From NCBI GenBank assembly GCA_946965045.2, contig OX337230.1, forward strand, positions 2,294,001-2,358,000: a stretch of DNA of 64,000 bases, written 5' to 3'. The DNA comes from Epithemia pelagica (Eukaryota > Protista > Bacillariophyta). The notes under the pieces were generated by a model. That model made no database searches and was not told the DNA's origin. It was given only the letters and a program-made list of their open reading frames with translations. A program made the position numbers and the translations under genes. Shown piece by piece: positions 12,244-54,499 of this stretch (positions are counted from its first letter, which is position 1; each line of letters begins with the position of its first letter).

Positions 12244-12336
12244 CGGAGACCATGAAAAGTCAAATGAGATAACATGAGTGCAGTCACCATTGCTAATTTA
12301 GCTGGTTTGTCTTAAGTCCATTTAACTCAACTACGA

Positions 12337-13443
12337 CTAAGGCACTTCACAATCTCCTCCTTCGGCCTCAGGTTTATTCGCCAGACGTAGACGAGCCATA
12401 TCCTCTTCCGTCAAAGAGAAACGGAAAATGTCGCGATTCATGAGAATATGATCCACATTGTTGCTTTTCGGAATCACACCACCCATTCTCGTAGGGTTTC
12501 CATCCTCTTTGATGTCCAACGCTTGCTGGACGATGAATCTCAAGGCAACCTGCGATCCTGTTACATTTTCGTATTTGGATGCAATGCCATTCACCAAGTC
12601 ACCGGATACCAGTGAATCTTTGGGCTCGTACGAGCATGGGCCGCAAAGAGGCGAAAAGCTCATGAACGTTATGTTATTCTTTTGACAATGTGCAATGACA
12701 TGGTCCACGTCGCCCGATCCCACATGATACTCTACCTGATTGATGGATGGTGTTACGATATTGGATACCTTCAGCACATCGTCAATGTGCTGGGTACAAT
12801 AGTGACTGATCCCAATGCTCCTTGCCGCACCTGAGACGTAAATCTCTTGAAGGGTACGCCATTCTAGTTGCCGTCGTTCGGGAGTGGCCCGTTCAGGGGA
12901 AACTTGCCAATCGGCCGGAAAGTGTGTCATTAAGTGGTCCACATAGTCCAGTTGAAGTTCCAACATATTTTTCCTGTGAGCGGCCCATACTTCAGCCCTC
13001 GTTAGACCACCTGGAATCTTGGTCAAGACAAACAGTTCCGACCGGGGACGTTTCCAGCAATCTTGAATTGCTTTCCCAACGCCTTGTTGATTGTGATAGC
13101 CAAATGCCGTATCTATCATGGTATAGCCCGCCTGGAAGGCTTTGCATACGGATTCATAGGCTATGGAATCATTGTACTGCCAAGTTCCAGCTCCAACCAG
13201 CGGCATGTACACTTTTTGGTCATTAATGTCCGTGCCAATGAGAATGGACGGAATCGGATTGTCTCGTTGCGATAACGTCGATCCTTGAATGGCTGTTGTT
13301 GTACGGACAGCAGTTTCCACTGGGGCTCTGTCCACCCAATGCAAACAATCACGACAAACGAAAATCGCAGAGAGAATCGTTGCTACCAAAGCAAGTAACT
13401 GAAATAAAAACCTTGCCAGCTGTGCCATGCTTCCGAGCTTCAT
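12337..13443 (-). CDS. Aldo-keto reductase with N-terminal hydrophobic anchor (copy 2, paralog of 2132-3235)
   Basis: DTAFGYHNQ, LTKIPGG, DHLMTHFPADW, ARSIGISHY, PSINQVEYH; long stretches identical to copy 1. N-terminal FLFQLLALVATILSAIFVC is hydrophobic. Confidence 0.9.
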   Translation of the reverse strand: MKLGSMAQLARFLFQLLALVATILSAIFVCRDCLHWVDRAPVETAVRTTTAIQGSTLSQRDNPIPSILIGTDINDQKVYMPLVGAGTWQYNDSIAYESVCKAFQAGYTMIDTAFGYHNQQGVGKAIQDCWKRPRSELFVLTKIPGGLTRAEVWAAHRKNMLELQLDYVDHLMTHFPADWQVSPERATPERRQLEWRTLQEIYVSGAARSIGISHYCTQHIDDVLKVSNIVTPSINQVEYHVGSGDVDHVIAHCQKNNITFMSFSPLCGPCSYEPKDSLVSGDLVNGIASKYENVTGSQVALRFIVQQALDIKEDGNPTRMGGVIPKSNNVDHILMNRDIFRFSLTEEDMARLRLANKPEAEGGDCEVP

Positions 13444-13789
13444 CGTCCTGTCACTTCCCAAAGATCTTCACTTCTTCACGAGAATGAGAACAAGATTTTT
13501 CCCTCGAGAGATCGCGGCCATTCCCGGACAATCCCAAGATCGAATCTATGGTTTCCATCGTCGAGCTACCCCACGTATGTCGTCGTCGGAAGTCGTGGGT
13601 AGGCACGAAAATCATAGTTGTAATAAAATCATTTTAGAATCGAAGATTATCCCAAAGCGTCCTTCGCCATCCTGAAGCCCACAACAACTTATTGTCTTGG
13701 CGCTTTTGATCACCTCAGCAAAACCTGCAATAGCAAAGGCAAAACTAAACTTTGCGACACTGGATTGACTTCCTTCTGTTTCAGAGGTT

Positions 13790-13935
13790 ATTATTTCGTC
13801 AACCGCGCCAACATGAATACCAAAAGCTTTTCCACAGTCTTGTTCCTACACAAGCCCATCATGGTTTACGTCTTCGGTAAAAGAAACACAACGGCGCCGG
13901 AGCAACCTGTGAAGGTGTCACTGTCATGACGGAAA
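13790..13935 (-). pseudogene. Possible relic of a trypsin-like serine peptidase domain
   Basis: Minus strand reads HDSDTFTGCSGAVVFLL and, after a frameshift and stop, DCGKAFGIHVG. This resembles the GxSG...xxIHxG catalytic-serine region. Short and disrupted. Confidence 0.3.
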
Positions 13936-14079
13936 CTTTAGCACTTCTCTATAACTCAAGAAGATCAAAGACAAGTTTCTCCTCCGTCTCCTATGTCCGG
14001 ATGATATGAAGGAGCATTCTGTTGAGAACCCAACGTAGCCAATTGGGGGCTTTTGAAATTCACCTAATGGACTTTGTAC

Positions 14080-16431
14080 TCATGCATTTGCTGTCACATG
14101 ATTTAGTTTCATAATGGCCTCGGAACACAAGCGCATGGCTTCCTCCAGGATGGTGGACCACTCTATTCTGGAATCTCCCAACATTGTCATGTGATGATAC
14201 AGCTTTTGTTGCAAGGTCCGGAGTAAATCGTTCTTTGGCACTGCGCGCCGTCGCAAGGACAAATCCTTTTCCATATCCACCACAATACGACATTGGCGGT
14301 CAATGTTTTCTTCATTATCATCATCACGTACGTCCAGTCGTTGAATCAGCCATGTCGACACGTCCACATCAATTCCCATCTTGGACCGGACATGATATTG
14401 AACCAAAAACAACGACACGATCAGAGCTGGAAACACTGACTCCCACCAGCTAGTATCCTTCTCATTCAACACAACACTCGGTCTGACCTCGAATAGATTA
14501 TCTGCAGAGACGATATGAAGCATCAAGCGAGATGCATCTGCGTCATTTTTGCGGTGACGACGGAAACGGCCGAACATGGCATTTCCTTTTGTGGTTGATG
14601 CTTGTTTGAAAGAGGACAAGACGTATAACCGAGGGCATGGGGGAGTCACCTCTCGGACTTTCCATGGAATGTGAATTTGTAGCTGTAATGGTTCGTGAGG
14701 GCTCAAAGTATTTCCACAAAAATGATAATGGTAGTTTTCCTTGTTTTGATTGTTGCGTCGTCGTTCACGCCAGTGTACCTCCAGGAGGTTGGCCACCGGA
14801 TTGTCTTCACCCTTTCCACGATCGGATTTTCGCTTGGTCAAGTACCCAAACAAGATGGATCTCCACATTCGTTGCAATCGCATCAATTCTTGACGGTCCT
14901 TTTCATAGGGTATCTTGTACATGGCATGAAGTACATTCGGATGATACTCCTCACTGAATTCCGCAAACACCATGCGGAGAACGAGGGCTTGCTGGGACTT
15001 CAATAGTCTCTGTATTTGTCGCGCCATTCGTTCCAGACAGGATTGTGGTGTGGAGAGGATGTTGAGTGACAACGATTCGACTGCTGACAGTCCTTCTCCC
15101 GATTCACTGCATCCACCAAGCACAAGCAACCTGTCTTGGTGGTTCCAAGAGCGCAGATAAGAGGAGTACGATGATGAAAATGACGACGACAGCCAAAGGG
15201 TGGAGGGAAGGTATACCATGGAACACCATTGTCGTGTGACTGTCAAATCGGGGAGACTCCATACTACCCCACGATGAGGATCCAAAACTTGCACCGATTT
15301 GAATGCATCATTGTCATTGTTTCCTCCAGCTATAACAAGACATTTGCCAACGCGAGATACGGCCGATCCCCATCGATGAGTGTCCAGTTGCAGATCGTCC
15401 CGAATGGTCCAGGATGACGATAATGAGAATACGCCTGTCGATGAACCGCCGGAGACCGAGTCGGAATGATCATAGTTGTCGAGGCGACATTCTGTATTAT
15501 GAAGTGCTCTGTGTGCCTCAAATGAGATACACTCCACCATGCCTGTTAATGATTCTCCATTCTCACTGCCCCCTCCGCCACCACCCACAACAAAAATCAA
15601 GTCGTCCACGACCGCGGCTCCCAAACGACATCGTCCATAATTCATCACAGGTCCACTATCTATGACCAAGGCCAAGGAAGTTTTGTTCTCATTTCTTTCA
15701 CCTCCACTATCAGCGTAAGATGTGCCTTTCGTATCAATGATATCTGTTGTGGCCAATGGTTGCATGTCCTCGTTACACCCGCCCATGACGACAATGTAGC
15801 GATTGTGTACAGCCACCGCCGCGCATCCCACACGGGGAGATGACAGGCGGCCATGTACGGTCTTCCACGTCTTGTTTCTCTCATTGTAGCTTTCTTGTCT
15901 AGACTCTTGGCATAGACTCGAATTTTCAGCACTCAAGGAAGCTGTGGTAGTCGTTTTCCAGTCAGAACCAAAGGCCGACAGAGGGATTCGTTCCATGGTA
16001 TCTAAAAATGTCAGACAATCCCTCCCTCCAATGGCAAAGAGGGAGCCATTGCAAACCACAGCACACAAATCAGACCGTTGCTCATGATCTTCGAGACTTG
16101 GTCCTCTCCGCCACTGGTGTAACAGGCTATCCCAGACAATCACCGAAGAATTGCTATCGTCGTTGGCATGATTATCGGCAGCGGGGCGACGACAAAATCC
16201 TCCCACCACGACTATCACAGGATAACAAGTCAAACCACAAGAGGCATCTTCTTGAGGCGTTTTTGCCACGGATACCACCACTACCGACGCATGAGCAAAT
16301 CGTGCCCGACCACCCCACAATGGAGGGAATTCCGATACGTTCCATTGCGATGATGTCTTCAAGTCGAATCCAGACAAGAATGCTTGTTCATTGAATCCTT
16401 CAGTGCATGCCTGTCCTATGGCATCGTTCAT
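14080..16431 (-). CDS. Kelch-repeat beta-propeller protein with uncharacterised C-terminal half
   Basis: Repeated hydrophobic-GG Kelch motifs: VIVVVGG, SLFAIGGRD, YIVVMGG, LIFVVGG, CLVIAGG, LLVLGG. Single 783-codon ORF. Confidence 0.8.
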   Translation of the reverse strand: MNDAIGQACTEGFNEQAFLSGFDLKTSSQWNVSEFPPLWGGRARFAHASVVVVSVAKTPQEDASCGLTCYPVIVVVGGFCRRPAADNHANDDSNSSVIVWDSLLHQWRRGPSLEDHEQRSDLCAVVCNGSLFAIGGRDCLTFLDTMERIPLSAFGSDWKTTTTASLSAENSSLCQESRQESYNERNKTWKTVHGRLSSPRVGCAAVAVHNRYIVVMGGCNEDMQPLATTDIIDTKGTSYADSGGERNENKTSLALVIDSGPVMNYGRCRLGAAVVDDLIFVVGGGGGGSENGESLTGMVECISFEAHRALHNTECRLDNYDHSDSVSGGSSTGVFSLSSSWTIRDDLQLDTHRWGSAVSRVGKCLVIAGGNNDNDAFKSVQVLDPHRGVVWSLPDLTVTRQWCSMVYLPSTLWLSSSFSSSYSSYLRSWNHQDRLLVLGGCSESGEGLSAVESLSLNILSTPQSCLERMARQIQRLLKSQQALVLRMVFAEFSEEYHPNVLHAMYKIPYEKDRQELMRLQRMWRSILFGYLTKRKSDRGKGEDNPVANLLEVHWRERRRNNQNKENYHYHFCGNTLSPHEPLQLQIHIPWKVREVTPPCPRLYVLSSFKQASTTKGNAMFGRFRRHRKNDADASRLMLHIVSADNLFEVRPSVVLNEKDTSWWESVFPALIVSLFLVQYHVRSKMGIDVDVSTWLIQRLDVRDDDNEENIDRQCRIVVDMEKDLSLRRRAVPKNDLLRTLQQKLYHHMTMLGDSRIEWSTILEEAMRLCSEAIMKLNHVTANA

Positions 16432-16976
16432 CTCCGAACGACCTCGAGATGAGGAGACTATTGCTTGTTATTGTCGTTCATTCATCGCGTCACCAGTGTT
16501 ATGGATATGGGTTATTACTCCCAAGCTACAGTGATTATTAGTCGCACCTGAGTCGAAATCATGTTTCTATTATATGCTAATAAAAACCTGACACTTATTC
16601 ACGATCCACATGGACTTACCTTCCGCTGGAGAGTAGGGTTTTTTGTTCTTCGTTGACTAGGTCGTCTATGTGCCTTCACACTATCTTTTTTCACTCTCTC
16701 TAACCCAAAAGTATGTCAGATTTATCAGGACGATCATACGATACGGCTATAGATGATGCATCATGTTGGACATCAAGCTATTTCTAGAGAAGGGAGTGGG
16801 AAAATCTTTGCAGCTGGACTGCAATGGAAACAACCCAACTGTGGTGGGATGGATATATGAATCATTTCATTTGTTATACAGTAGCCTTCCAACAATTGAC
16901 AAAAGTGAGGAATGTAGTAGCGACCCTCCTTATTTTCTCTTCTCTAGACAAGCACGTCGAATTCACATCACTGACA

Positions 16977-19900
16977 TCAAACGTTGGTAATCTTTTTGCT
17001 GCCACTACTTCGCCGAGAAGACTTTTTGGAACGTTTACTGCTCTTGTTCTTCTTTTTCGATTTCTCGGATTTATTGCGTGATCCACTGGGAGACTCGTTC
17101 CCACTGTCCATTTCTTCGTCCTCCTCTCGTGGAGATGGCATGAGACTAAGACGAATCTGAAATAAAAAGCAAGGCGTGTTGTTGAGATTTGTGTTTCGCC
17201 CATTTCCTTGTCAACACAACATATGAAAGCAACACTAGAACTTACTTTTGGCAATGGCTTGACTTCAATCAATACGGGCTCTTTGGCCTCTTCCTGCGGA
17301 GATGATTGAGAAGATTTTTTCGGCGGCAAATCGAATTCATCGGAGCGTGGAACAACTGTCTTGGCGACAAGGCGCTTGGCGGGATCGGCTTCAGGAACTT
17401 GACTAATGAGACTGGGCGTGGAAGGACGGACGTGGTCGGTGGTTTCAGGACTATCACGACCCGAGTTACCCAACATGTGGTCAAATGACACCAGACCACC
17501 AGCCGCTGATCCACCGCCTGTTCCCTTTCGATCATTACCAGCTTTTGGTGTGGGAGAAGTATGAGACGTCTTTGAAGATGGTTTTGGTCTGGCCGGGGAA
17601 ATGGAGGGGGGCGGTAAAGTTACCTTCCCTTCAGCAGAGACTCTCGTTGACGCAGCCGTGGGCGGTACGTATTGTTGTGACGACCCGGTGGATCTTCCAG
17701 GGGACAAGGCAGAACCGATTGATCGTCGCCCGACCGAGCTATTGTCGTGTTGTGGTCTCGTAGCGGCTTTGCCGTTAGCTGACGCATCCGCCATGCCATC
17801 GACAACACTAAGAAATCCAGCAAGTAACCCCTTGCCTCGTACCCCGTATCGATCCTTTATCTCTTCCACCACCAGCTGGAATGCCTTGTGGACAGCTGCT
17901 TGATTCGACATGTCTTTGCCAATCGGTCGAATACTCGCAATCACAGTTGCCTCGCAAGATTTACTATCGTGAGCAGGCTGTGACGATGGCCGCAACAGAA
18001 TCCGGACCTTGATCGAGAATCCTCGTCTGGGATTACGCTCGCTAATGACCAGCACCAGTTCGTTGGAGTCGTCCGCTTCCACAGTATGCACTTCCGTCAA
18101 TCGTACCAACGCTCCATATCGAGGTCTTTGAAAGCTAACCGTACGATGGGCATCGCACATGCTACCAGAGGCAATCAATTGGTGTTCCGAGGCATGACGT
18201 TCCAGTTCTCGGGGTGCCGATCGCGGAAACGTCCAATCCGTCTTTTCGAATTGAGCATCCCCACGATCATTCTCCCAGGTTGTTATGACAGGCGAGGTGG
18301 AATCCAGGAGCAGCACACGACACAGAGGCAATGGCAAGGGTAGCCGCACCTGTTCGGTGACACGACGATCCAACGAAAGGCCGTGGGTATAGTGAGGAAT
18401 TCCTTGCTCCCGTGAAGATGCGGCCTGTCGCATAAAGTGACGACCAGGGACATTACCCCAAGTTCGATTGCTCTCATTGGCATCTTCTGCTGCCAAAGAA
18501 ACTGATTCTGTATCGGACGTGTTGTTGCCAGTACCACTTTGGTTGTAATAGTTGGAAGAAGAGTTTTGTCTTTGTGACTGACGTCTAGACCGCATTGTGC
18601 CGTTTGTCGAGGTTGTAAGAGACCCTCGTTGTTGATGTTGGGGTTGCTGCGGAGTACTATTGGTGTTGTTGTTGTTGGAAAAGAAGGACGTGCGTGGGAT
18701 ACCGCCACGCATATTTAGTCGAGTTGTTTCACGTTCCAACAAGAGCTTGAGACCACACACTAGCAACTCGGCCTCTCGAAAATTGTTGGCCAAAAACAAG
18801 AGTTGTGTACCGCTCACATCTTGAATGGAAATTATTCGTAAATGTTCCATCTTGTCGTACGAGGTTTGGGATTCTTGTTTGAAACGAAGATTTCCCACCA
18901 TCTGTTTGGGTGGATCTTGAGTCAATAAAGTGACATCTGTGAGTCCAACCGAATGCTTGCGAGACAATTGGACATTGTTGGTTCGAACATTGTGCGGCAA
19001 CGATGAGACCGTATGAGTACCATCGCCTCCTTGCGTCCTCAAGGCGGAATCCAGTGTGACTTCTTCGGATCCGACGGTATCGTGATCGGTTCGTCCCACA
19101 CCACTTCCACCGAGATGAGAGGCAGTCATGTCATTCCGTTGCGCTCGCTGGGTCGATGACTTGTTACTAATGACACCTTCTCCATCCGACAACTTGGAAA
19201 CAAATCCCAATCGAAGGGATCCCACTTCTGGCAACATGAGCCAAAGTGTACGTCGCTCCTTGGCGGTCCGCGACAATCTAGAGGAGGACGACGATCCATG
19301 GCCTTCCGGAATCACCCGTTGGACCGAGACACCACCGTACATAAAGGCCTTGAATTGAGTTTCAAAGGTTTCCAATTCTTCCAGTTCCTCTTGAGAAAGC
19401 GACATGGTTTTACTGCCACTCGAGAGGAAACAAAAGGGTGTATGATTGTGTGACAGGGTGCAGGTTTGAAAGGACCACGGATGGGACGAGTTGTTGCGCA
19501 AAATTTCGGGTGGTCGGGGCAAACAGGACATTTCATGGGTAAATTCCACAGAATGAAGGGCCGCATACAACTCTTCCGCTTCTGGAGGAGTCGCAACCTT
19601 GCCCGTCAAAATGTCATGCGAGGTAACATCTTTGCCAGCGACAAACTTGTAGGCCCGACGATTAATGTCATCGCGGGTGAAGATGCGTGAGCCTTCCAGG
19701 CTGACACCAATGTACAATCCCTGGCTCTTGGCATAGGCGACAATGGGTGCAATGGCCAAGGCAGCCGGTTGCAGCAAACCATTGTCGTCTCCTTCATCAT
19801 GAGCGTGATTGTATTCATCGTCCTTCATCATGACGGTATTGGTATTGCCACACACAGTCCCTCCGACCGAGGCGGCTCCATAGGCTTCCCGACCGACACC

Positions 19901-29390: not shown

Positions 29391-30409
29391 TCTACGCGTT
29401 CAGCATTCTCACTCTCGACTTTTCTCGTTCCAACAACAATCATTGCTCGATGGCGATGGATCTTCCACCGAAGGCCGTCCGCGCCGGTCTCTCCCTATCT
29501 GATTTTTGCCGCGTAAACTCTATCGGCTACGAGTCGAAGATTCATATATATTGGTTAATATGTTAGGAGAAACTATATCGGTAGTAGTTAGAAATGGCGC
29601 GCACCAACGACCAGCGCGCCAGAGCAGCACCGCGAGCCCATCTCACAATCAACGGAGAACGGAAAAAAGGGAGGAGAAAAAAAGACAAGAAGAAAAAGGA
29701 AAAACGAAAAAAGAGGAAGAATTGCCTCCCAACTCTTTCATCTGCATCTTGCGGTTTTTTTTCTTTTTCCTCTTCTTCTCTTCTTCTTCTCCATCGTCTG
29801 GAGGTGAGTCTTCAACTGTATCGAATGGTTTTCTCACTCCACACCGAACTGGCAGTTTGATGATGAAGGTGAGCTCTTAATGATTGAAATGACTGATGAC
29901 ATTTTCCCATGCCACAGGCATTTTTTGTTGTTGTTCTGCTCTCTTGCCAAGAAATGAGAGTTTGTGCCGAATGGCACGATTATATTGTGCTGTTCCGCAC
30001 ATGCCACCATTCGCAAAATTTGCTAGATTGTTGTGCCAAGACTCTAGCTGACTCTCACATTGGTAAGGGATATATTCAGAGAGCCCATGTTTGATATATA
30101 GTAAATTCTAAATTGATAGACTATCCTAGGCCCGTGACATACACAGGTTGGACTCGTCTAACGCGGCCTGGGCGACGGATTTATTGAAAGAGTGAGCAAA
30201 TAGTAGGTGGTGACAATGGGAGTACGGACATTGGAGCAGGAGAGAGCCCATGTTTGAGTTTGGATGTGGCTTGATCTCGTGGTACATTTTTTTCAGTGGG
30301 AGTGGGTCGGAAGTTGGGGAAATCGGCCCTACTATGCACAATCAGGGTTTTGTGGCAAAAAACTAGGTCTCTAGGGTATATTGTACTCCTAAGGAACTTT
30401 TCCCAAGTT

Positions 30410-30439
30410 TCCAAGGGGTACCCCCTAGCGGGGGTGAGT
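30410..30439 (+). repeat. Left TSD (TCCAAGGGG) plus left TIR of the AcademH-like element
   Basis: Read directly: tccaagggg|TACCCCCTAGCGGGGGTGAGT. Confidence 0.92.
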
Positions 30440-30777
30440 CATGAGGATTAGTGAACCAGATCTGGTGAGCATTCTCTATCTCACCCCCAAGGCGCGACCT
30501 TCAAAAATTGGCGATTTCCCAGTCCTGACACAAACACCAAACAACCACCACACACACACTACGGAGCAAATCTGGTTGTCGTCATATCGTCACCAAAGCA
30601 CCTTTGCACCTCCTTCCAAGACGTCAGCACCATTCCTCTTCCCTCTCAAGAACCTACGACGACGGCAGTTGCACCGGGAAACCCTCAAAGCGTCCGCAGT
30701 AACACGCCAAGTACCACCCCACTTCCCATCTACCATACCAACACGGAAAGCAATTGTTTCATTCTTCCAACAAAGCT

Positions 30778-32799
30778 ATGGCGTCGTACCAAAGGTCCCC
30801 AAGTTTTGCTGGCTATGCCTCCGAGCCACCCGAAGCCATTGAGTTGCTGGAAACTGCTATCAACAAGGGCTTTTTGCATTGGCACGGCAAAACTGCCCAC
30901 CAATGGCAAGTCGATACATGTAAAGCCCTTCTACACCGCCACACTGCCCCTGCCCCCATTCGTTCGCCTACTTTGCGTCCTCTCCTCCTTGTACGTTCTA
31001 CCGGAGGTGGGAAATCCTCCGTCCGCGACGTATGTGGTTTCCTTTGTGGCGGCATTACCGTGACAATTGTCCCATTACTAAGCTTGTCGGCCGATCAAAC
31101 CGCCAAGCTTATTGAAGTATGCACCAAGCAATATCTGCACAGCCGCGTCCATGTGTTTAATCTTGACGTGCTGCGTTCCCCTGACGTCAATATAACACTA
31201 CAGTCTGCACTCGAGCGACTTTCCAACAATCAATCAAACAAAAAAAGAGTCCTACTATTTTCTTCCCCACAGAAAATAGCCAACGACCGGTCTTGGCAAC
31301 GAACTCTTACCAAGTGTGCATCCAAGGGCGCTCTCCGCTTTGTTGCAATCGACGAGTGCCACTTGTACGCTGGCCACGGTGTCGAATTTAGGCAAGAGTT
31401 TGGCGAACTGAAAGCGGCTTTCCTTGACAAACTGGAAACGCATTCTCCAATTCCCATTCCCATTCTCTTTATGACGGCTACTGCCTCCCTGTCTATGGTC
31501 AAGGATCTTGAGTTTCTCACTGACCTCTCCTTTGATCGAACAAAGGACTTTGTCTGGCCCCACCAGCATTCCGGAGTCCATCGCCGGAACATCATGATTG
31601 ACTTGACTTTCAGAGACTCTCCTCTTCGTCGAGTTAAGTCGGACCTGGTACGCATCTCTCGGGTCCCCGGAAACCGTAAAATGATCGTTTATTCGAATTC
31701 AAGAAAGGCCATAATGCATTTGTATGAGCAAAGTCGGCAGGAGCTAAACCGTCGTGGAATCCACAAAGACATTGTTGTGGTCCACGGCAACATGTATAAA
31801 GAGCAGAAGTTTCACAACACCGAACTTTTTGCTGGACCGCCGTTGGTAGATGAGTGTCCTACTACAAGAAGGCTCCTACGCTTCGACCCAGTAGCCTACT
31901 ACGCCACTGCCGCAACAACAAGTGCGGGGCTGGATTGCCACGAAGTGGACCGGGTTCTATTCCATGGATTCCCTCCTACAATTGAAGACCTCCTACAATG
32001 CTCCGGTCGATGTGGACGAGCTCCTACTGCTACACCTTCAAACTCGTCATTTTGTATGGCCGTCTCGCTTAACAGTCTTGTGTCCTTGCTCAACAGGATT
32101 TTTATTCTACCCAAGTATGAAGCCGCTCGACAATCGAAACAAAACGACAAAGCCGACGATACTTTCCTCCAGCCCGTACGGTCTACCACCACCTCCCAAT
32201 TGCAGTCGTCGTCCTCTCCTTCTCTACTTGATCACGAGGCACTTGCGACACGACAATGGAACAATGTGTTGTCGGTCCTTGCTATTGTTTGCTTGGATGA
32301 TGGTTCATGCATTCATTGGGCCCTTGAGCGGACCATGTTGCACCCACTTCATCAGAAGACCTGTGACCTTGACTCGACTTGTGGGGGTGCCTGCTGGCGA
32401 TGTCGCATCCCGCGAATTTCGACTCCACTTGATGCACCGATTCATAAGGAACATTTTCGTGCACACCTCATTCAAATGTTTATCACTAGCAAAGTTTCTT
32501 CCGACAAACTCAACCTTCACAAAGATGTTTTCCTTAATACCATGATTGGGTTCGAGAGTCTTACATTGGATGGGAAACTGGAGCAACGCTTTGCCCAAGA
32601 TGTTCTGGGCCTAAACAACAACCGCACTGTCCGTCAACGAGCGAAGGCCCTTATCCTAAAATGCTTTGCAGCTCGTATACTCGAGCCAGATGTTGACGGA
32701 TTGCAACTACGAGTGAAATTGGGCTACTCATCCAACGGCAATCCACGTGTGAATGACGACCAATGTTGGAAGGGGTTTCAATTTCTACAGAACATGTAA
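30778..32799 (+). CDS. Transposon-encoded RecQ-like superfamily 2 helicase
   Basis: Q-motif HQWQ, motif I VRSTGGGKS, Ia VTIVPLLSLSADQ, II VAIDECH, III MTATAS, V TSAGLD, VI QCSGRCGR. RecQ-type Zn cluster C..CGGACWRC follows. Uninterrupted ORF inside the TIRs. Confidence 0.9.
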   Translation: MASYQRSPSFAGYASEPPEAIELLETAINKGFLHWHGKTAHQWQVDTCKALLHRHTAPAPIRSPTLRPLLLVRSTGGGKSSVRDVCGFLCGGITVTIVPLLSLSADQTAKLIEVCTKQYLHSRVHVFNLDVLRSPDVNITLQSALERLSNNQSNKKRVLLFSSPQKIANDRSWQRTLTKCASKGALRFVAIDECHLYAGHGVEFRQEFGELKAAFLDKLETHSPIPIPILFMTATASLSMVKDLEFLTDLSFDRTKDFVWPHQHSGVHRRNIMIDLTFRDSPLRRVKSDLVRISRVPGNRKMIVYSNSRKAIMHLYEQSRQELNRRGIHKDIVVVHGNMYKEQKFHNTELFAGPPLVDECPTTRRLLRFDPVAYYATAATTSAGLDCHEVDRVLFHGFPPTIEDLLQCSGRCGRAPTATPSNSSFCMAVSLNSLVSLLNRIFILPKYEAARQSKQNDKADDTFLQPVRSTTTSQLQSSSSPSLLDHEALATRQWNNVLSVLAIVCLDDGSCIHWALERTMLHPLHQKTCDLDSTCGGACWRCRIPRISTPLDAPIHKEHFRAHLIQMFITSKVSSDKLNLHKDVFLNTMIGFESLTLDGKLEQRFAQDVLGLNNNRTVRQRAKALILKCFAARILEPDVDGLQLRVKLGYSSNGNPRVNDDQCWKGFQFLQNM

Positions 32800-32834
32800 A
32801 CAATTGTCTTATTCCATATATAACTATATCTTGT

Positions 32835-35800
32835 TCAATTGTTCTGAACTGTCTTCTTATACAACTCAAATGCATCTAAAGCTTCGTCCAGTAGGTCGCC
32901 CTGCAACGTACCACTGTCATCTCTTTCCATCCAGCCAGAGTCCGGTCCATCGCTCTCCATTTTCTCCAGTCTAAGAAATAATCGGTGTCGTAGAAAATGG
33001 TGCTCTCTTTCTTTTCGTTGTGAGTCCCATTGCCTTGAAGTTATCACATTCTTTTCCGCCATTTCCTCTAAGGCCACACTGATTACATCTCTTGTAGCGA
33101 TCGAATTCATTTCTATCACTTTCATTCCTTTCACTCGGCCTTTTTCTTTCAACTCTTCACCTTTGCTTCCTGTCTTGTCTTGGATGTCGTCCCCCTCATC
33201 ATCGTCACTTCCTTCATCGTCTTCCTCTACAACATCCTCCATTGCTATATCCTCAGCTTGTGTTTCAAGAAATGGCTCTTCAGCCTCATGTGCACGTTGC
33301 CTATCACCTTCACCTGCTTCCTCATCATCATCCATTTCATCATCGTTAACTTGCTCCATATCGACCGGTATTGAATCCTGTTGTGCTCCACCCATCCCAT
33401 TATCGTACTCGTGCTCAATTTCAACTAAACAAGTGTCCTCATTTGAAAAATACGATGCCTCCTCGTCCTGTTTACTCTCTTCATCTGCCATGACTTGTGC
33501 AAGGTCTATTACAGACGTTTCCTCGTCGTCATTCTGGACTTTGTTCGAAGAGGCCTCAGTCGCCTTGTTGTCAATGGCCGTCTCCTTGTGACGACCCAAC
33601 ATGTCATGTACCTGTACCATCACATTTTTGTCTGTAGCATCGTCCTGTACTTTACCATTACCAACGCGGCGTATTTTTTTTTGGATTTGTAACGAGGTTG
33701 CATCCATTGCTTTCCAGAAGTGATTCTTATCCACTGCCATGTCTTCATGGCAACCAACATCGTGACACTTGGCTAAGGTCAACAGTTCCGTAACCAGGAC
33801 CCGGTTTAGTCGACTCATGGGGTTAGTGGTTTTCTTCTTCTGCTGTCCAGGGTCTGTCGTTTGTAATACTTGCTTCTCGTCTGTCTCGTTTCTCTGCTCC
33901 TTCAAGCGCTCGGCTAACTCGTACTCCCCATCCATTCTGTTCCGTGTATAAAATTCTACGAAATGCTTTGCTCGTTGGCACGAAGTGAACATTCGGGAAA
34001 CCTTAACGAAGGATGCCTCCGTACCATTGTGGTTCATTGCCTTGAAAAATGGCATGATGCGTTCCATGATTTGGTCCAACGCGCTTTCTTTCGTATTCCA
34101 TGATGGTGTGGAACCACGTTTTTGTCGCTTAGTTCGATTGACTCTAATTTGATGCAGCACGTAGTTGGGGAGTCTCTGATAATAGAGCTCGATGATGCGC
34201 AATTGTGTATTGAAAGAGTTTGATTTCTTTGCAATGTAGAAAACAGGGAGAAACTCAATGACCATACTCTCCATTGTTATGGAATCGCCCTGTTGCTCAG
34301 CTTCGTGGAACATAAGGTACTTCCTCATTATCAACAGGAAGTTACATGAAAAGACTGTAAGCCAGTCCTTGCTCTCACGGACTTGGCGACTCAAAAATTG
34401 TATGTACTCTTTTGCTATAGTTGTGGCCAGAGCTTCTTCCCTCCCACGATCGATGAACGAGTCCACTCTGTCTTGAGTGAAGCAACGAATCATAAAAGCG
34501 TCTATCATAAGACGGTCAAGTTCCTCAAAAACAATGACTGCAAGACGGTGGGCCTGACGGTAAGTTTGCGCAACATCATTGCCATCGATGCGTTTCCACT
34601 TCAGTCGGTGTTGAACACACTGAAGGAAACCCCCGTAAAAAAGACGAAATATGGAGTCTAACATGTGAAACCGTACATGTAGGTCCCCATTGATTGGGAC
34701 AACGCGATGTAGGACATGTGTAATTGCCATGGCCTGTTTATATGCCGCTCGAAAGGTCGAAGTTTTTGCGTCGCTAATGGCCATGAGGTCATCAAAAAAT
34801 TGGAACAGACGATCTATCGATAAACCGTCTCCAACAACGAAGAGCCACTTCTCTTCCCAATCCAAACCAGGCTCGTAGATACCACGATCCTCGTCCCAGG
34901 TTAGTAATCCGTGCAAGACCATAAAATCCAACAAAATTCCAGAAGCGCCAACCTTTGTAGTTTCATCTAGAATGGAGACTGGGAGCAGTAGCAATTCTGC
35001 CACTGGAGGTTCTCCTCGCCATTCACGCACAACACGACTTGGGAACTGACCAGCCAAATGGAAAAGACTCGCATCCCGTTCCTTCCTCCTCAATGTATTC
35101 ATGGCGCCAGCAATGGACGAGCGGACGTTGCTATACGCAAACTCATATGGTTGCAATGCGTAATCCATATCTTGTCGAATGGACCGACGTTTTGTGGATA
35201 GGAACCTTTTTATTGTCCCAAGTTCTCGACAGCACATGTAAATTTGCAAGTAGAACCGAACACGAGTGCCAGTACAGTCGAAAGGAGGCGCTGGTCCATC
35301 AGTTGGATTGAGGTTGCCAGTGGCAAAAGACCTGACCAATTGCGGTAAGCTGGACTGCTGAAAAACTTCGAAGGGAGGCATTTGGTATGGGGATGGAATA
35401 TCTTGTTCGATGTATGCCAGCTTTGGGCGATCAGATAGAAAGCATTACTTTGGGGAAACTTCGCCAAGTACATTTGCATAATGAACCTTGCTGTTACCCT
35501 AGTGTAGATTGCGCTTTGGCCTTGCTGAAATTGGAGGAGTCTCCCATCCTGTAAGTTGTCGAAGACGGCCATTAGAAAGGTAACCTTGCGCAATGACCGT
35601 CGAACTCTGGCATCGTAGGAATCTACCCATGTCTCTACCCTCCGTTCCATAGTTTGTTTGGAGACGGAGATACCAAACCAAACCGGAATCTGTGTGGCCA
35701 TTAATGAATGGCCACAAGCATACTGCGCAAAAGCAAAGACCGTTGCGAATGGTACCAAAAGATGATTGTTATGATTTCTGGCTCGGACAACAAATTGGAA

Positions 35801-37840
35801 GAAGGTATCCAGTGAATAACGAAGGCTGAGAAATTCTCTGTCCTCAGCTGCGGCACTCTCCAGTTTCTTGGTATACCCACTGTAGCCCATGATTGCTTCA
35901 AATTGGTTGGGAAGCGACTTCTCAAATTGCGACACAATTTGTCTCAATTTGTACTCGGACAGGAACATTTCAAAAATATTGTTGAATCGTCCGAAACAGT
36001 CTTCTATACGCTGTAGCAATGTAGTGTCCACCCACTTACAGAATGGCTCGACAACGTCCTTCACTATGATGGGAGAATAGAGCTTCGATGCGCGCAATGT
36101 TGCTTCCTCGACCTTTTCATTTAGTTCTTGGGCCATGGCATCCCTTGCATTCTTCAGAACAGTCTTTGTGTCAAACGGTTCCCAAACGCTACGCAGTTCA
36201 GCGAGCATGAAACGGTCCCCTGGTGTCTCTTGAACCAATCTGTGTAACAGAGTAAGTCTGTCATCCGAGTCATCTTTCACGGATTTGAAGGTTGCGTTCC
36301 ATGGGCGCTCTGGGTGGTAGTCTGCTTGTAAAAACACTGACTGTGGGAAGTGGAAGGCTTCGAACCAAGACAGCTTTTCTTCAAGGCAATCAGTAGTAGG
36401 TGGGGCTACGAAATTGCTCGAAGAAGGTGACATGATAGGGAATTTCAACCGGATGGTGTTTTGTGTTGCTTCACCCATTGCTGCGAAAATGGTCTTGTAT
36501 GGCACGGTAAGATTGGCGTCAGTAAGGCGGTTGATATCGCCGTTGGCATGAACCCATCCGGTGAGTTGTTTATACCGGCGACCCTGGCAAACAACGGTGG
36601 GTACGAAGTCTGATTGTAATGTGGCACGCCATATGGAAAGCCATTTCTTTGAATACCGCGGAGGAAGACTTTCTTCATGGAAAAACAAAAGAACAGGGAG
36701 TCCCTCCTTGAGGAACCAAATGTCCTCCAATAGTAACGTCCGCAGGGCAAAGGAGGTGACTAGTTGAATCGGAGTTGTGGACGCATTGTTAGACTCGGGA
36801 GTCTGTTGGGTTGTATCTGACGATTCCGCATGTTTCCGTTTGTTCGTTGTTTTGTTCGTGAAGCGTCGTTGTTTGGAGGTGCCGGTGGGCGACCGAGATA
36901 CACCAGCGGTGTAATTTTTTGCCCGTCGCATCATTCCGGAACAATAGTTGGCCACCAGCGTCAGCGAAGACTTTTTGGATGCCTCAAGGGTCGGGGTAAT
37001 CAAAACCAGGGGTGTGTTTGCTGACGCAGCAGGTCCTGGGTTTTTGCATGGCAATGGAGGGACCCGACGGAGAGGGACTAGATACGAACCTTCACGAACT
37101 TTGGTTACTTTCCCTTTGAAGAGGTTAGGGTATTGTTGGTCCTGGTTGGTGGAAGATGCTGCAGGAGGAGGATCTTTCGGTGGACCTTTCTTTGGTGGAG
37201 CTTTCTTTGGTGGAGCTGTTGTCGTAGGGACTTTTGTCAGACGGAGGGTCGGTGCCGCAGCTGTTGTGGTATCCGGAGGGGAAGGTGAAGGGTCCTCACC
37301 ATTGGATGCCTCAGCAGGGACTGTTCGCTCCATAGCAGCAAGCAATTTCAGAGCCTTTTGAGGGGACGATTGGGTCCCAAACTGGATTTGCCCAACTGAA
37401 TCCCGATTGTGCCAAAGGTCAATGAACAGTGGTTGGGCTCTGTTGTTGGTAGAAGGATTGGATTCGTTGGATTGATTGTATGGATGCGGGGTTGGTTCGG
37501 GGCGTGGCCGAGGAGGAGGAGCAGAGGCATTACTTGTGGTTGTGGATAAGTCACTTGTACCTGCAGTTGGAACCATCGTACTAACCATCGTACTGTGTGA
37601 ATCCACGGTTGCTTTCGCATGAGGTGTGATGAAGGGAGGGACTGGAGTAGGCTGAACGGCATCAGATTGGCCATCAGAGACATTCGTTCTCGATGAAGCG
37701 AGAGATTCCATTCCGGCGATATGGACGCTTGATTCTTGTTTTGCTTCGGAGGCATGGCGATCCACTGTGCCCCGAGAAGCATAGGCCTTCCTAATGTCTT
37801 GCTGGGAACTGCGATGGCGTTTGTGCGAAGAAGAAGACAT
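32835..37840 (-). pseudogene. Academ-type DDE transposase (~1670 codons) with a single frameshift near 35400-35447
   Basis: Two overlapping long ORFs (35210-37858 and 32835-35381) in different frames. Motifs MAVFDNLQD, WLFVVGDGLS, PINGDLHVRFH and SALDQIMERIM match the DN / GD / GxxH / DxxxE pattern I associate with Academ (DUF6589-like) transposases. Acidic C-terminal tail. Confidence 0.75.
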
Positions 37841-37995
37841 TGTAGGGACAGTAAGCACGGCTCCGTACCTCCATTGCCGCGATGAATGCAGTTGGTGGTT
37901 TGGAGGTTTGTGTCAGTACTGGGAGCGCAGAGGTCGCGCCTTGGGGGTGAGTAAGAGTTTGCACACCAAAAGCACGACACATATGCGACCCGACT

Positions 37996-38025
37996 ACTCA
38001 CCCCCGCTGGGGGGTATCCAAGGGG
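37996..38025 (-). repeat. Right TIR plus right TSD of the AcademH-like element
   Basis: Read directly: ACTCACCCCCGCTGGGGGGTA|tccaagggg. Confidence 0.92.
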
Positions 38026-38324
38026 GGATGCACGAGGATACACGACCACTAATGGAATGTGGACATAACACACTAATTATTGGATGATAGACTTGAGTCA
38101 TGTTATCTCTCTTATCTCTTTGTAGAGAGATCCACAGCTGCCATATCTCTGGCTAGTCAATCCTTTCAAGTGCACTGGAACCTGGTGTCTTATTGTTTGT
38201 ATCATCGGAGACAAATTGTGACGTGGGAATTGTGCGTCACATATGGGGCAGGTATAAATTTTAACGCGAGCGCGCTCTTATCGCGACGGCCCGCTCGATT
38301 CGGGTTGGCCTGCTCGATTCTTCC

Positions 38325-42056: not shown

Positions 42057-42617
42057 GACATTTGTCCCCATTAGAATGGGTGATGAGCAAGTCTTCAAGT
42101 TGTTGCACAGAGATGTATGTGCTGGGAACCTCTTGCCCACTTGGCCTCGACTGGATGCCATTTCTGAAAATGTGAGCACAGCATGTTGATCAGAGCCCCA
42201 TCATTACTGGATGCATGGCCTTGCAAGACTGGCAGTAGTATGAAGTGACAAGGACGTAGTCGGGCACGCCATGCAGACCAAAGATAGGAAATACGCTGTT
42301 GGTCTGGGAGTCTGGGAGAGGTTGGTTCCCCCAATCCACAATGTATAACTTCTGTCTTACAATTCAGTCCCAGAGGGCATCGTTGTTGTCGCGCACCTTG
42401 GGAACTCGGAACTCCATATCGTGCATGTAAGCCTTCTGTTCGGCTCAAAGGGAAGGATTTACACCTGCACCACACAAACCCCATTAGGGTTTTCAATACT
42501 AGATTTCGTTGCGCAAACTTTAACCAAATATTCAAAAATGTATAGCTTTATTTCAGAAGACATATAGACACTTATCTGAAAGAGCATCAAAAGATGATTC
42601 GATCTATATGCTTATCT

Positions 42618-44209
42618 TACCCCCCAGTGGGGGTGAGTGAGTCCCGCAGGCCTCATTTGGAAAAAGGGAACGATTCAAGAGGTGTATATTTTCTGTCCTT
42701 CGTGCGTTGTACAACTTTGGCCTCTTGTTTTTTTCCAAAGCACCTGCCATGTCAAATCGTCAGCCTGCCTTCGATCGTTGAAATCTGAACGCCGCCGGCC
42801 TCGCCTCGTATTTTGTGCCATGCAATCGTCTCACTTCTCACTTTTCAACAAACCACAAGAAATGACAATGGGGCTGCAACAAAATTGAACAATCCAGCAA
42901 AATGAATGACCATAGCATGAATACTACTGTCAAGATCTATCCCCTGGATCATCAGTAAACGCGGCAATCAACCGAATGAGAAGAAGGATGAAAAATGACA
43001 AGATGACAATCAACCAGTGTGTGGACGACATCAGAGTCTAAGGAAGGACACAATACAATGGATAGGGCCAGGAAGCCTAAACAAATAAGAGGAGTACCTA
43101 GATACATACTCCCTCCGGCCTTTTTTTATCGCACGAAGTTGAGAAAAATGACATAACGTCTCGAGCGTCAGCCCGTTCGCGCTAAAAATTATATAGATCG
43201 AAAGCTTATTACTAGACTCAAATTTCCATGTATAATTTATATGTTCCATCTCACAATCCTGGAGAGCTACATGGAACTAAAAGAGGCTAAAAACGCAATC
43301 CAAACTTTGGCGTACCGGTTCTGGCCCCCCAGGCGCACCCAAGGGATGGCACCCTCCAGACAGGCCCGCGAGGGGGTAAAGTACATAGACTTGCCGGCTA
43401 ATGACTGTGGACGTTCTATAGACATTCATCTATCCTTCCCCATCTGAATGGCACCTTGCCAGAGGTGTTTTGTCTTTCGTCGCCAAAATTTTTGGAGTTC
43501 ATCGATCCATCATAAGTAGGCTATGAGAGTGCGCAGAGCAACTCGCACGCGGTGGACTTAATTAACTCCCCCGAAATTTCATCCAACGCACGCGCGCGTG
43601 GTCGATTCCTATGTGTTCTTCGACTGCTGTTACAGAAGCGGTTAAAAGTGTCACGCGATAGAAGGATAATTAAGTTGTGGCGCGTGTCACATTGAATGTT
43701 CATCTCTAAAATTCGACTCCGAATGAGCCGGCCATCCTCCTGTAGAAATGTACCAGGTCCTACGAGTGGTGTTTATGCGACTGATTTTTCGAAAAATAGA
43801 TCGTGCGATAAAAAAGGCCGGAGGGAGTATAGAGTTGACTATGCTTGTATTTTAGTTGCAGTCAATGTACTACTCCTAAGAGCTTTCCTTGTTGTGGGCC
43901 ATTGCCACTTGTCTTGTGTTTGTGCATGTTTTTTTCTGTTTCACGTGTGTGTTCACTGTTCATCCTTGTGTGGGATTTCTTCGCGTCGTGCTCCTTATCA
44001 AGCCAAAGCCAGGGCGAAGCGCGCGAAGCCAGTTATGACAGTTGGTATGGACGTTATAATTACTGCTTTTAGAGTAAAAAACTGAGTTATAATTTCAAGT
44101 GAAAACTAAAATGAAAAAAGAAAAATGTCGGATGGATGACAGAAGTTATACACCCGCCGGATCGGACAGGTTATAATGAGACTGACCAGGACGCCCCTGC
44201 TTGGGGGTA
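42618..44209. mobile_element. Non-autonomous AcademH-like element, 1592 bp
   Basis: Left end TACCCCCCAGTGGGGGTGAGT matches the right TIR of the autonomous element 20/21. Right end ..CCCCTGCTTGGGGGTA. Perfect 10-bp TSD ATGCTTATCT at 42608-42617 and 44210-44219. No transposase or helicase ORF. Confidence 0.85.
43109..43827. mobile_element. Stowaway-like (mariner-family) MITE, 719 bp, nested in the non-autonomous Academ element
   Basis: TA|CTCCCTCCGGCCTTTTTTTATCGCACGA ... TCGTGCGATAAAAAAGGCCGGAGGGAG|TA. Classic CTCCCTCC terminus and TA TSD. Confidence 0.88.
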
Positions 44210-44782
44210 ATGCTTATCTCCGATCCGACCCTTACATTTTAAGCCTTCCCTTTGAGCCGAACAGTCTTAAGTCTTAAGTGATAAAAGATCACGTTTTCTC
44301 TCTAAACACACTAAACACTGTTCACATGGCTTTTGGTAAGAGAAGACATGTCTTGTCTGATTTTTTGTTAAGTATTTTCTGTCTTGTCTATGTCATGTGA
44401 AATTTCTAAACCAATCATATTTCTGCCATGTTTTTCTTGCTTGTTGGGGCTAGATCTTATCTAGAGGTTGTGTCGTCCGTGGATCCGATGATGCAAGACC
44501 GCTGTTCTTCGATGGTTCTGCGCTGAGACATAGCCTATTTTCCGACTAACTTACCTAGTCACGCCGGCTACCCTGCAGGTCCAGAGTGTCAATGCGGATC
44601 CTGAATCCTGAGACTAGCTAATCGGAGATGCTGCTCCCAGGCGCGGGACACCCAACACCCAACCCTTCTGCTTGCATATGTTTTGTGCTACTCCAGTAAA
44701 ACTATACTACTAGAGGTACAAGTCGTAGTATTGGTCTCGCAAATTCCAAATCCATTTGCTAACATGGTGTAATAGAGGGTAG

Positions 44783-46879: not shown

Positions 46880-49212
46880 CCTCCGTCTGTTCCCCTCACC
46901 ATTTTGATGGCTCGGTCCATTGGTGGAGTCGAGAACACCGTCCCGTTGCGTGCCCTGCTCGACATCTCCATGTGCTTTTACACATTCGGCCTCGATGAGG
47001 AATCAAGCAATCTTTGCGTCATTACTACGCCTTTTGGCAAATTCCGTTACCATCGTCTGCCGATGGGTGTCAAACAATCTCCTGACTTTTGTCAAGAGAT
47101 CATGGAAGAAGTCCTCAAGGACTTCAGTGAACATGTCGAAGTCTATATCAACGACATTGGCATCTTCTCCACACTGGGATCAAGCCCTGGAAAAAGAAGA
47201 TCTCTGCCATTCTGGCATTGGCTCGGCCAAAGACCATGAAAGAGCTTCGTTCCTTCATTGGCATGATCAATTTCTATCGCCATATGTATCCACAACGCTC
47301 CCATATTCTTGCTCCCCTAACATCCATTACGGGCAACAAGACCCTCGTTTGGTCCCCGCAATGTCAACGTGCTTTCGAACAAGCCAAGTCCATGCTCGCA
47401 CATGATGCCTTTCTTTGGTATCCCGACCATAACCTTCCCTTCCGTGTCTACGTGGACCCCTCTGATTACCAGCTTGGTGCTGTCATCATGCAACAAGACG
47501 TTCCCGTCGTATATTACTCTCGCAACTTAAACCCTGCTCAACGCAACTACACTACTATGGAGAAGGAGTTACTCTCCATTGTCGAAACCCTTAAGGAGTT
47601 CCGCTCCATGCTTCTCGGCTGTGCCGAACTGCACGTCCATACGGACCATAAGAATCTTACCTACGCTACCCTCAACTCGCAACGGGTCCTCCGTTGGCGG
47701 TTGTTCCTCGAGGAGTACAATCCGATTTTTCATTACGTCCCTGGCCAGGACAATGTCATCGCCGACGCCTTGTCGCGTCTCCCTCTCTCTGAAGAGGAGG
47801 AGAAGAGTGTCTCTCCGTCATCGACCTCCTCTACGGTTGCCTCGCCGCATCCACGATCGCTCTATGATCATAGCGGACAACACTCAGTGTTGCAAGTGCC
47901 TCATGGCCCTAATGATGACCCCTGCTCTCATCACTCGCGTGACCCAGACGCTTTCAAATCTCCCATCTTCATGGATGAGGATTTGATCGATGTCTACCTC
48001 AATCATCCTCCCATCACGGCAAATCAACCCTTGCCTGTCGACTATGCGACGATTCATCAACATCAACAGAACGATGCCATTCTTGTGGCCAAGTTGACCG
48101 AACAACCACAGAGATTCCATCTCCAGCCCTTTCCTACGGAAAATCCACAATACAACTTGATTTGTTATCGTCAGAATCCTAATGCCGCGTGGCGTATTCG
48201 TATCCCAGACAGCCTCTTGGCCCATACCGTCAATTGGTATCACCTGTCCCTCAATCACTTGGGGTCTGCGCGTCTTCGTGAGACGATTTCTATGCACATG
48301 AGTCATCCTGACTTGGGCCTGTATTGTGAACAAGCCGTGTCTAGTTGTGCTACCTGCCAACGCTCTACAGTCATACATCGTCATTACGGTGAGCTCCCTC
48401 CTCGAGAGGTCCGAGGCAATCCATGGGCTGACATCTCTGTCGACCTCATTGGACCGTGGAATGTCACCGTTCATGGGCAAAAATTAACATTTCAAGCCTT
48501 GACTATTATTGACAATGTCACTAACTTCTGCGAACTCATTCGCATCCATGATAAGACGGCACGTCACGTGGGTCTTCAATTGGAAAACGCGTGGCTCTCA
48601 CGCTATCCTCGTCCCGTTCGTTGCCTTTTTGATCAAGGCGGTGAATTTATCGGACATGCGTTCACGCAAGTTCTTCGTAACCATGGCATCAAGCCAGTGC
48701 CGTTGACGGCCAAGAATCCTCAATCAAATGCTCTTTGCGAGCGGTTACATTTGACTGTTGGCAACACTCTTTGTGTGATCACCAACTATGAACCACCACA
48801 AGATGTTCAAAATGCTGCCCTTGCCATGGATACTGCTCTGCAGACCGCTGCGTACTCCACTCGCACTGCCATTCATGGCGCTTTGAAATATTCTCCCGGC
48901 AGCCTTGCGTTCCATCGCGACATGCTGTTCGACATCCCTATTATCGCGGACATGGAAACAGTCCGTCTGAAACGACAACAAATTGTCGATGAATGCGCTC
49001 GTCTCGCAAATCGTTCTCGTGTCTTCCATGACTACGCTATCAACGATCTTGTGCTCCTTCGCGCCACAAATCCGGACAAACTTGAGCTCCGCACAAGTCC
49101 CAATCCCTTTCGGATTACACAAGTCCATTCAAATGACACTGTGACTATCCAACGTGGTCCCCACGTCACTGAATGAATCAACATTCGTCGCCTTGTTCCA
49201 TTTCGTGAATAA
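46880..49212 (+). pseudogene. Gypsy pol remnant: PR stub fused to partial RT, then RNase H and integrase
   Basis: PLRALLD|[28 protein letters not shown]. RNase H YVDPSDYQLGAV..EKELLSIV..VHTDHKNL. Integrase H..LNH..C..C, VDLIGP, FDQGGEF, SNALCERLH. Premature TGA at 49174-49176. Confidence 0.88.
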
Positions 49213-53314: not shown

Positions 53315-54496
53315 CCCTTTTTCTTGTAGTCGTTTGATTAGATCGTCTATTAGTTCCATTTTAGGAGCACAGACACCACAGTTGTCTACCCACAGAAAAA
53401 TGATGATGTTGTCTTTGTAAAGCAAACACTCGTCATGAGCACTAAGGGTGAATCCGTCTTCCTTTAAAGCCTCTAGTAGGTGGGTATACCATAACCTTGG
53501 AGCTGAAGACAGGCCATATAGACTCTTGATGAGTCGCAGGCAGGTCTCTCCAGGTTTGCCAGACCTAAATCCTCTAGGTAAATGAATCCATACAGGTTCA
53601 TCCAACGTAGCTTGTACAAATGCATTGTTAAAATCAATGCAGGCAAGCTCCCATCCTAGGATTAAGCTGACAGTGAGGACAATACGGATTGAGCTCCAGT
53701 GAACAACTGGGCTGTAGTTTTCTTGTTCCGTTTCCTGTAAGTCTCCTCTCACACAATATCTAGCTTTGTGTTTGAGGATCTCACCATCGGGAGTTCTCTT
53801 TCGTTTAAATACCCAAGTTCCTGGTAGAATCCGCGTTTTTGCCTGAGATTTTGGGACCTCTTCCCATGTTCCTTTACCTTCGAGTTCCATAATTTCTTTG
53901 TGTGCGGCAACTTTCCATTTTTCAATGTCAGCATCTCGCATGGCTTCGTCATAGGAAAGCGTATCTGGATCAGAGAGAGATGCTTTCATGACGGTCAGGA
54001 GGTCGCTATGATCTACAGATGGAGGAGCAGTAGGATGAACGGTAGCCACATTTATTTCTTCTACAAGACGAGTGGGCCGTTTAACAGTCCGACCGGAGCG
54101 ACGAGTGGTGATGGGTGGTGCGAGAGAGGGAGTGGAACTGGAAGTGGGTTGAGTGGATTTGCGAGGACGGGACTCCCTCTGAGGCCGAATCTCCCTCTGA
54201 GGAGATGGACCAGGGGAAGGAGTAGTGTTGAGAGAAGGAGAAGGCAAAAGAGGGGTCGTCGAAGGCGAGGTTTCAGCGACCTGGTCAGTTTTCTCCCTCT
54301 GAGGAAGGGGTGTATTGGAAAAGGACATCCGCTTAGGGGATGGTTGATACACCGGTTCCTCATTGGGAGCTGAAATCGATACGGGTCTGTTGCTTGGTGT
54401 CGAACTGGGTGCTGGTGCGCCACTGGGAGTAGCACGGGGATTAGTTAAAGGAAACGTGCCAGGAGTGGAACTGGGTTTGGAAGGCGATGGAAGCAC
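53315..54496 (-). pseudogene. Copia reverse transcriptase, catalytic motif mutated and truncated
   Basis: GTWVFKRKR, KHKARYCVRGDLQ, IDFNNAF, SLYGLSSAPRLW. The YVDD motif reads WVDN (53381-53392). Confidence 0.85.
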
Positions 54497-54499
54497 GGC

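Follow-up and report, generated by a model that had tools for sequence, protein, structure and literature searches.

A probable AcademH-type transposon with a RecQ-like helicase, recently inserted in the genome of a diatom

The window analyzed here, a stretch of 64,000 nucleotides of contig OX337230.1 from the diatom Epithemia pelagica (assembly GCA_946965045.2), contains at positions 30419-38016 what is very probably a 7,598-bp cut-and-paste-type DNA transposon of the Academ superfamily and of the AcademH type, recently inserted in this diatom genome. The element is bounded by terminal inverted repeats (TIRs) and a target site duplication (TSD), and carries two convergent genes, which code for a RecQ-like helicase and a DDE-type transposase (Table 1). 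To our knowledge, Academ is among the least studied superfamilies of eukaryotic DNA transposons, and its helicase-bearing lineage is known only from animals and fungi; a 2020 article by Kojima (Mob DNA 11:15) reportedly deals with AcademH of these two groups, as its title has it. AcademH elements encode a helicase and generate TSDs of 9-10 bp, while AcademX elements encode a nuclease and generate TSDs of 3-4 bp (PMC10045372). Among fungi, AcademH was reported in Basidiomycota, Ascomycota and Mucoromycota (PMC10799480).

The TIRs of 21 bp that a first-pass annotation of this DNA had recognized were recovered at 30419-30439 and 37996-38016; they start with TA, are identical at 20 of 21 positions, and found no match in shuffled versions of the window. 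The perfect 9-bp TSD claimed at the same time was likewise borne out. The 9-mer TCCAAGGGG occurs exactly twice in the whole window, in both cases flanking the element, and only once in an empty site of the kind that the annotation had suggested looking for. This site was detected in Logan contigs from three runs, X1-X3 (two samples, one organism), aligned on 32300-38290. In X2 and X3, a contig covers position 38017 onward, and the preceding 30 letters are those of window positions 30380-30409, such that the contig runs from the left flank through a single TCCAAGGGG into the right flank. The contigs originate from two independent samples, and the TSD of the window element is proven by them. Given mismatches at 5 of the 102 flank positions, the empty-site contig represents another haplotype or strain; when an allelic contig was sought in the assembly by means of the neighboring DTW gene, the exact protein was found on the window contig only. 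Past position 38016, several distinct sequences continue in all three runs, which indicates that other copies terminate at exactly that base.

Further copies were retrieved from ENA assembly ERZ21939226, in which the window lies on contig ctg1247l. Two copies at other loci belong to the same family as the window element: L003, diverged by 0.67% and flanked by the 9-bp TSD AATTTACAT, and L001, diverged by 1.39%, with a TSD of 9/10 bp. Two sister families of ∼65% nucleotide identity are represented by L002 (10-bp TSD) and L005 (9-bp TSD). Together with the window copy and the non-autonomous element at 42608 described below, 9-10-bp TSDs were thus observed in six of the six elements examined in this genome. 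The insertion is recent, as the annotation had supposed, since an empty-site allele is present and the copies are only 0.7-1.4% apart, and the polymorphic state of the insertion implies that the population was recently active. That the locus might be immobile, with chance repeats on either side of a RecQ gene of the host and two genes for hypothetical proteins, is next to inconceivable; its sole support is the treatment of these genes as ordinary proteins by annotation pipelines, and it is already refuted by the exact empty-site allele, by the presence of three or more near-identical copies that lie in unrelated contexts and have separate TSDs, and by a TIR that is never expected by chance.

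The three copies of this mobile family carry private lesions, as seen in a three-copy alignment. L003 is missing 1 nt at 33674 and harbors a nested element of 924 bp; in L001, the helicase has lost 120 bp in frame, and two 1-nt indels and an insertion of 7 bp are present; and the window copy lacks one base in the transposase gene. Such copy-specific lesions are the pattern of independent decay after insertion. The 924-bp element of L003 lies at the equivalent of window position 30461; it is an unrelated small TIR element with inverted termini GAACACCACCGATAT.. and is without counterpart in the window. L001 itself (7896-7908 and 15395 onward) is inserted in another, divergent Academ element, within its terminal repeat (TACCCCCAAGCG..); the helicase and transposase of that element are located at 15.4-20 kb, an instance of Academ nested in Academ.

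The ends of the window element show a double-motif architecture, in which a motif of the ACCCCCWAG type appears twice per end, as an outer and an inner copy with ∼58 nt between them. Of the five occurrences of the 9-mer GGGGGTGAG in the window, four fall at the two ends of the element and one at the end of a neighboring short element. Two pairs of subterminal inverted repeats (30463-30500/37931-37968 and 30517-30535/37906-37924) accompany the motifs, and the same double-motif ends are present in the sister families L005 and L002. Folding of the single-stranded termini into hairpins gave z-scores of merely −1 to −2.1, and no hairpin is claimed. Kolobok elements (KolobokH) have a TTAA-specific 4-bp TSD and 5'-RR..YY-3' termini (PMC9587614); this superfamily was rejected, as the TSDs here are 9-10 bp without a common sequence and the termini are TA..TA. 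In window positions 37900-38099, the summed contig depth of runs X1-X3 reached ∼3100 over the terminal 100-200 bp, compared with 75-106 for the flank and 157-260 for the body of the element. The high terminal value suggests that many more elements share these termini, although summed depth is not equivalent to copy number.

The transposase gene lies tail-to-tail with the helicase gene, with 35 bp between both stop codons. The first-pass annotation had described a single DDE-type open reading frame (ORF) of ∼1670 codons in this orientation. Its size and orientation stand, but the gene is present in the window as two overlapping ORFs in different frames, at 35210-37858 (882 codons) and 32835-35381 (848 codons). 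In the three-copy alignment, the base at 35436 is missing in the window alone and is present in L001 and L003, and seven paralogous proteins, including the intact P0043 of 1673 aa, align unbroken across this point. Read through the single break, the gene comprises ∼1668 codons from the ATG at 37840. For an intron at the ORF junction, the sole GT..AG candidate in the right phase measures 41 nt; both an intron and a programmed frameshift were rejected, as both sister copies have one additional base at 35436 and the seven paralogs read through. The run contigs exhibit only the majority state (extra A) at this position, and the deletion in the window may be real or an assembly error. Application of 18 run-contig substitutions to the window restored a continuous frame that begins at 36809 and reaches the normal stop; a copy whose core is open probably exists, although such contigs may be mosaics of several copies. 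Since the frameshift falls between the first and second catalytic Asp, no full catalytic domain can be derived from one frame, and the window copy, as assembled, probably does not make its own transposase. The element had been called complete, which goes too far, since its transposase is frameshifted inside the catalytic core.

In terms of protein family, the downstream ORF matches Pfam DUF6589 with 37.8 bits (gathering score 27), so that the similarity which the annotation had proposed for checking was indeed detected. An exhaustive profile search produced 688 transposase relatives. In an alignment of 39 relatives, the motifs DNxQxG, GDGLS, GDLH and DxxxE are conserved, and 19 of the 39 match DUF6589 and no other family. 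An AlphaFold2 model of the P0043 core (pLDDT 88.6, pTM 0.88) predicts a DDE domain of the RNase H fold that is interrupted by a large helical insertion. In the model, the conserved Asp residues are located on strand 1 and directly past strand 4, and the conserved Glu on the helix next after the insertion, whose length is ∼200 residues; the DDE assignment, originally a guess, is backed by this model and by the conserved D/D/E residues. The top VIA matches of the core model were DDE transposases and integrases, the nearest being Hermes and the P element, and a Foldseek search of the model against PDB gave no significant match. Among the AlphaFold DB clusters, 30 matches were obtained (E from 1e-12 to 1e-7), chiefly to entries named "DUF6589 domain-containing protein", and the fold match to fungal and animal DUF6589 proteins had a probability of 1.0 over more than 600 residues. 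Clusters of the ESM Atlas retrieved by structure were DUF6589 clusters of Cnidaria (TM 0.63/0.73) and Mucoromycota, and those retrieved by sequence features belonged to Basidiomycota, Mucoromycota and Mollusca.

Members of the hAT and P element superfamilies generate 8-bp TSDs and encode no helicase. The window element is without detectable sequence similarity to either hAT (Hermes) or the P element and lacks the hAT dimerisation domain. The Pfam MULE/Transposase_mut families were found neither in the window ORFs at E 0.1 nor in the 39 relatives at E 0.001, and MULE appeared as a structural neighbor at a TM of 0.30 only. A rival origin would be the capture of a RecQ gene of the host by an element of the Mutator/MULE or hAT kind, superfamilies with TSDs of 8-10 bp. 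Such an origin is most improbable, considering that DUF6589 is the sole transposase Pfam family matched, and that hAT and MULE models align at just TM 0.3-0.35. The helicase also speaks against capture, on account of its history and its family score, as described below.

The helicase was annotated beforehand as RecQ-like and intact, and both attributes were confirmed. The ORF (30754-32799) matches Pfam DEAD and Helicase_C, and the motifs GGGKS, DECH, TAT and QxxGRxGR are undamaged. The best matches in PDB were RECQ1, BLM and RECQ5, all members of the RecQ family, at E of ∼1e-9, and the core is closest to RecQ among solved structures as well as among NCBIfam models. In contrast to the cellular proteins (RECQ1, BLM, RECQ5 and bacterial RecQ), the score against recQ_fam (TIGR00614) was 70.1 bits, far under the family cut-off of 219.8, and a Pfam scan of the helicase detected DEAD and Helicase_C only, with no RecQ_Zn_bind, RQC or HRDC domain. 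Judged by the family-model score and the C-terminal domains, the helicase is RecQ-like and would not be a cellular RecQ ortholog. Also unlike cellular RecQ, it is multi-copy: at least 17 clusters of helicase paralogs (53-67% identity) are present in the same assembly, several of which share contigs with transposase paralogs. The helicase occurs in every complete element, in constant linkage with the transposase. In the ESM Atlas, the cluster nearest to the helicase (30754-32796) is an unnamed DEAD/Helicase_C family that is commonest in Haptophyta, which hints that similar elements may exist in haptophytes.

The pairing of the two genes can be followed over considerable distances. Transposase and helicase are paired in L005, L006/L007, L008 and L009, and in the environmental contigs L006/L007 and L008 the convergent arrangement is kept at ∼27% identity. 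For helicase and transposase, respectively, the identities are 57% and 50% versus L005, and ∼27% and 27% versus L006 and L008. Such parallel divergence argues for a long-standing partnership and not for a recent capture of the helicase. In L009 (Skeletonema marinoi, JATAAI010000048.1), an unannotated helicase remnant at 11966-12580 lies tail-to-tail past the hypothetical protein KAK1733536.1, and shares 33% identity with the window helicase over residues 77-284 of the latter. The L006 element (9636-16998; JGI metagenome 3300021915, also L007) is bounded by perfect 25-bp TIRs that start with CACACTGTAG and by an 8-bp TSD, ACTTACTC, and the L009 TIR resembles that of L006. The 8-bp TSD of L006 means that TSD length varies among sublineages of the clade. 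At least 12 clusters of the transposase are present in the same Epithemia assembly. In named organisms, its relatives are "hypothetical" or "unnamed" proteins of two diatoms, Skeletonema marinoi and Cylindrotheca closterium, and a Pedinella (dictyochophyte) transcript; in Cylindrotheca and Pedinella, only the transposase homologs were observed. A word-indexed search with deep alignment for named fungal or animal proteins returned diatom and metagenome proteins only.

All of the AcademH features that could be tested support the assignment, with DUF6589 serving as a proxy for the Repbase/Dfam Academ proteins. Shared with AcademH are the TIRs, a DDE-type transposase together with a RecQ-related SF2 helicase, and TSDs of 9-10 bp; in addition, the elements are low-copy and diversified into many families, and DUF6589 is commonest in groups that host Academ/AcademH (Basidiomycota, Mucoromycota, molluscs and cnidarians). 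A literature search returned no link between DUF6589 and Academ, and homology to AcademH is argued here through this proxy. The AcademH interpretation of the first-pass annotation is retained on these grounds. AcademX would share the same transposase superfamily, but the partner gene here is a helicase and the TSDs are 9-10 bp, as opposed to an XPG nuclease and TSDs of 3-4 bp (PMC10045372); no XPG domain was found by Pfam in the three large ORFs.

In several respects the window element departs from previously described AcademH. It resides in a diatom, hence a stramenopile, and has relatives in other ochrophytes, its termini (TACCCCC..GGGGGTGAGT) are supplemented by a second, inner copy of the motif, and a related environmental lineage has 8-bp TSDs. 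The sequence also stands far apart from DUF6589 of fungi and animals, with which structural alignments give 10-15% identity. The top 150 profile matches, which comprise marine protists or metagenomes only and not a single fungal or animal protein, the Pfam matches to DUF6589 that are weak or absent in many members, the two terminal types and the 8-bp and 9-10-bp TSDs of the clade, and the haptophyte affinity of the helicase cluster lend some weight to a separate stramenopile lineage, related to Academ/DUF6589 yet outside of animal and fungal AcademH, which may have acquired its helicase independently. This appears unlikely, since this genome has both features that define AcademH, the helicase and the TSD of 9-10 bp, and the fold match to fungal and animal DUF6589 proteins is of the extent given above. 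It may tentatively be proposed, as a possibility that we do not favor, that the stramenopile elements with transposase and helicase form an old separate branch of Academ and did not split off from AcademH of animals and fungi, with a terminal architecture of their own and a TSD that varies among sublineages (8 versus 9-10 bp).

A literature search that included supplements returned no report of Academ in diatoms, stramenopiles or Phaeodactylum. The finding is a new host record, for diatoms, of a known kind of element, and not a new kind of element; the novelty originally claimed stands in this sense, although homologs are already in GenBank, unrecognized, as hypothetical proteins (Skeletonema, Cylindrotheca). 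The host range of AcademH-type elements is extended to stramenopiles, with a diversified population in one diatom assembly and relatives in Skeletonema. As foreseen, annotation would miss the element, in that its genes are called a RecQ helicase and hypothetical proteins, and its annotation as a RecQ helicase inflates the counts of host DNA-repair genes.

The element entered the TCCAAGGGG target and duplicated 9 bp, as the empty site shows; for the steps involved, the following is proposed. The transposase may bind the ACCCCCWAG motifs, two per end, excise the element and integrate it by means of staggered cuts 9-10 bp apart. The helicase, kept with the transposase across ∼75% protein divergence, might unwind the donor ends or target DNA, or handle repair intermediates. 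The window copy would now be non-autonomous and mobilisable in trans by intact relatives, since the intact sister L005 has a terminus identical to that of the window family. The known mechanism is unchanged by these findings, and L005 constitutes a concrete candidate for study of the role of the helicase. If the elements do form a separate branch, intact and recently mobile copies in a culturable diatom would offer a possible first experimentally tractable system, in which the role of a transposon-borne RecQ-like helicase, and its possible control of the target-cut spacing, could be addressed.

Table 1. Features of the transposon and of a neighboring non-autonomous element, in window coordinates.
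Feature	Position	Strand	Remarks
Left TSD, TCCAAGGGG	30410-30418	.	Single copy of the 9-mer in the empty-site contig
Left TIR, 21 bp, TACCCCCTAGCGGGGGTGAGT	30419-30439	+	ACCCCC/GGGGGT palindrome inside; alignment with other copies ends here
Left subterminal repeats	30463-30535	.	Inner copy of terminal motif, CTCACCCCCAAGGCGCGACC, at 30480-30499; second inverted repeat at 30517-30535
Helicase gene	30778-32799	+	ORF open from 30754; likely ATG at 30778; ∼673 aa; SF2 DExH, RecQ-like, apparently intact
Transposase, part downstream of frameshift	32835-35435	-	Listed ORF 32835-35381; DUF6589 match; acidic C-terminal tail
Catalytic Glu (LDQIME)	34062-34064	-	Downstream of frameshift
GDLH motif	34686 and below	-	Downstream of frameshift
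Second catalytic Asp (GDGLS)	34827-34829	-	Downstream of frameshift
1-nt deletion (frameshift)	35436	-	Extra A in L001, L003 and run contigs
Transposase, N-terminal part	35437-37840	-	Listed ORF 35210-37858; likely ATG at 37840; Pro/Ser-rich basic N-terminus, then start of conserved core
First catalytic Asp (DNLQDG)	35558-35560	-	In N-terminal part, upstream of frameshift
Right subterminal repeats	37906-37968	.	Mirror image of left set
Right TIR, 21 bp	37996-38016	-	Contigs of other loci diverge exactly past 38016
Right TSD, TCCAAGGGG	38017-38025	.	Perfect 9-bp match to left TSD
Non-coding, non-autonomous element, 1.6 kb	42608-44219 including TSD; element 42618-44209	+	Perfect 10-bp TSD, ATGCTTATCT

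The neighborhood of the transposon is rich in mobile elements. The termini of the 1.6-kb element at 42608 resemble the Academ TIR, the left one (42618-42638) at 20 of 21 positions and the right one at ∼15 of 21, and this element probably derives from the larger ones and relies on their transposases for mobility. Downstream, at 47218-49173 and 54448-58146, lie remnants of retrotransposons, with an RNase H-integrase ORF of the Ty3/gypsy type and a gag/pre-integrase ORF of the copia type. The nearest atlas cluster of the neighboring DTW gene is commonest in Bacillariophyta, which fits the diatom host that the first-pass annotation had surmised, as do the homologs in named diatoms.

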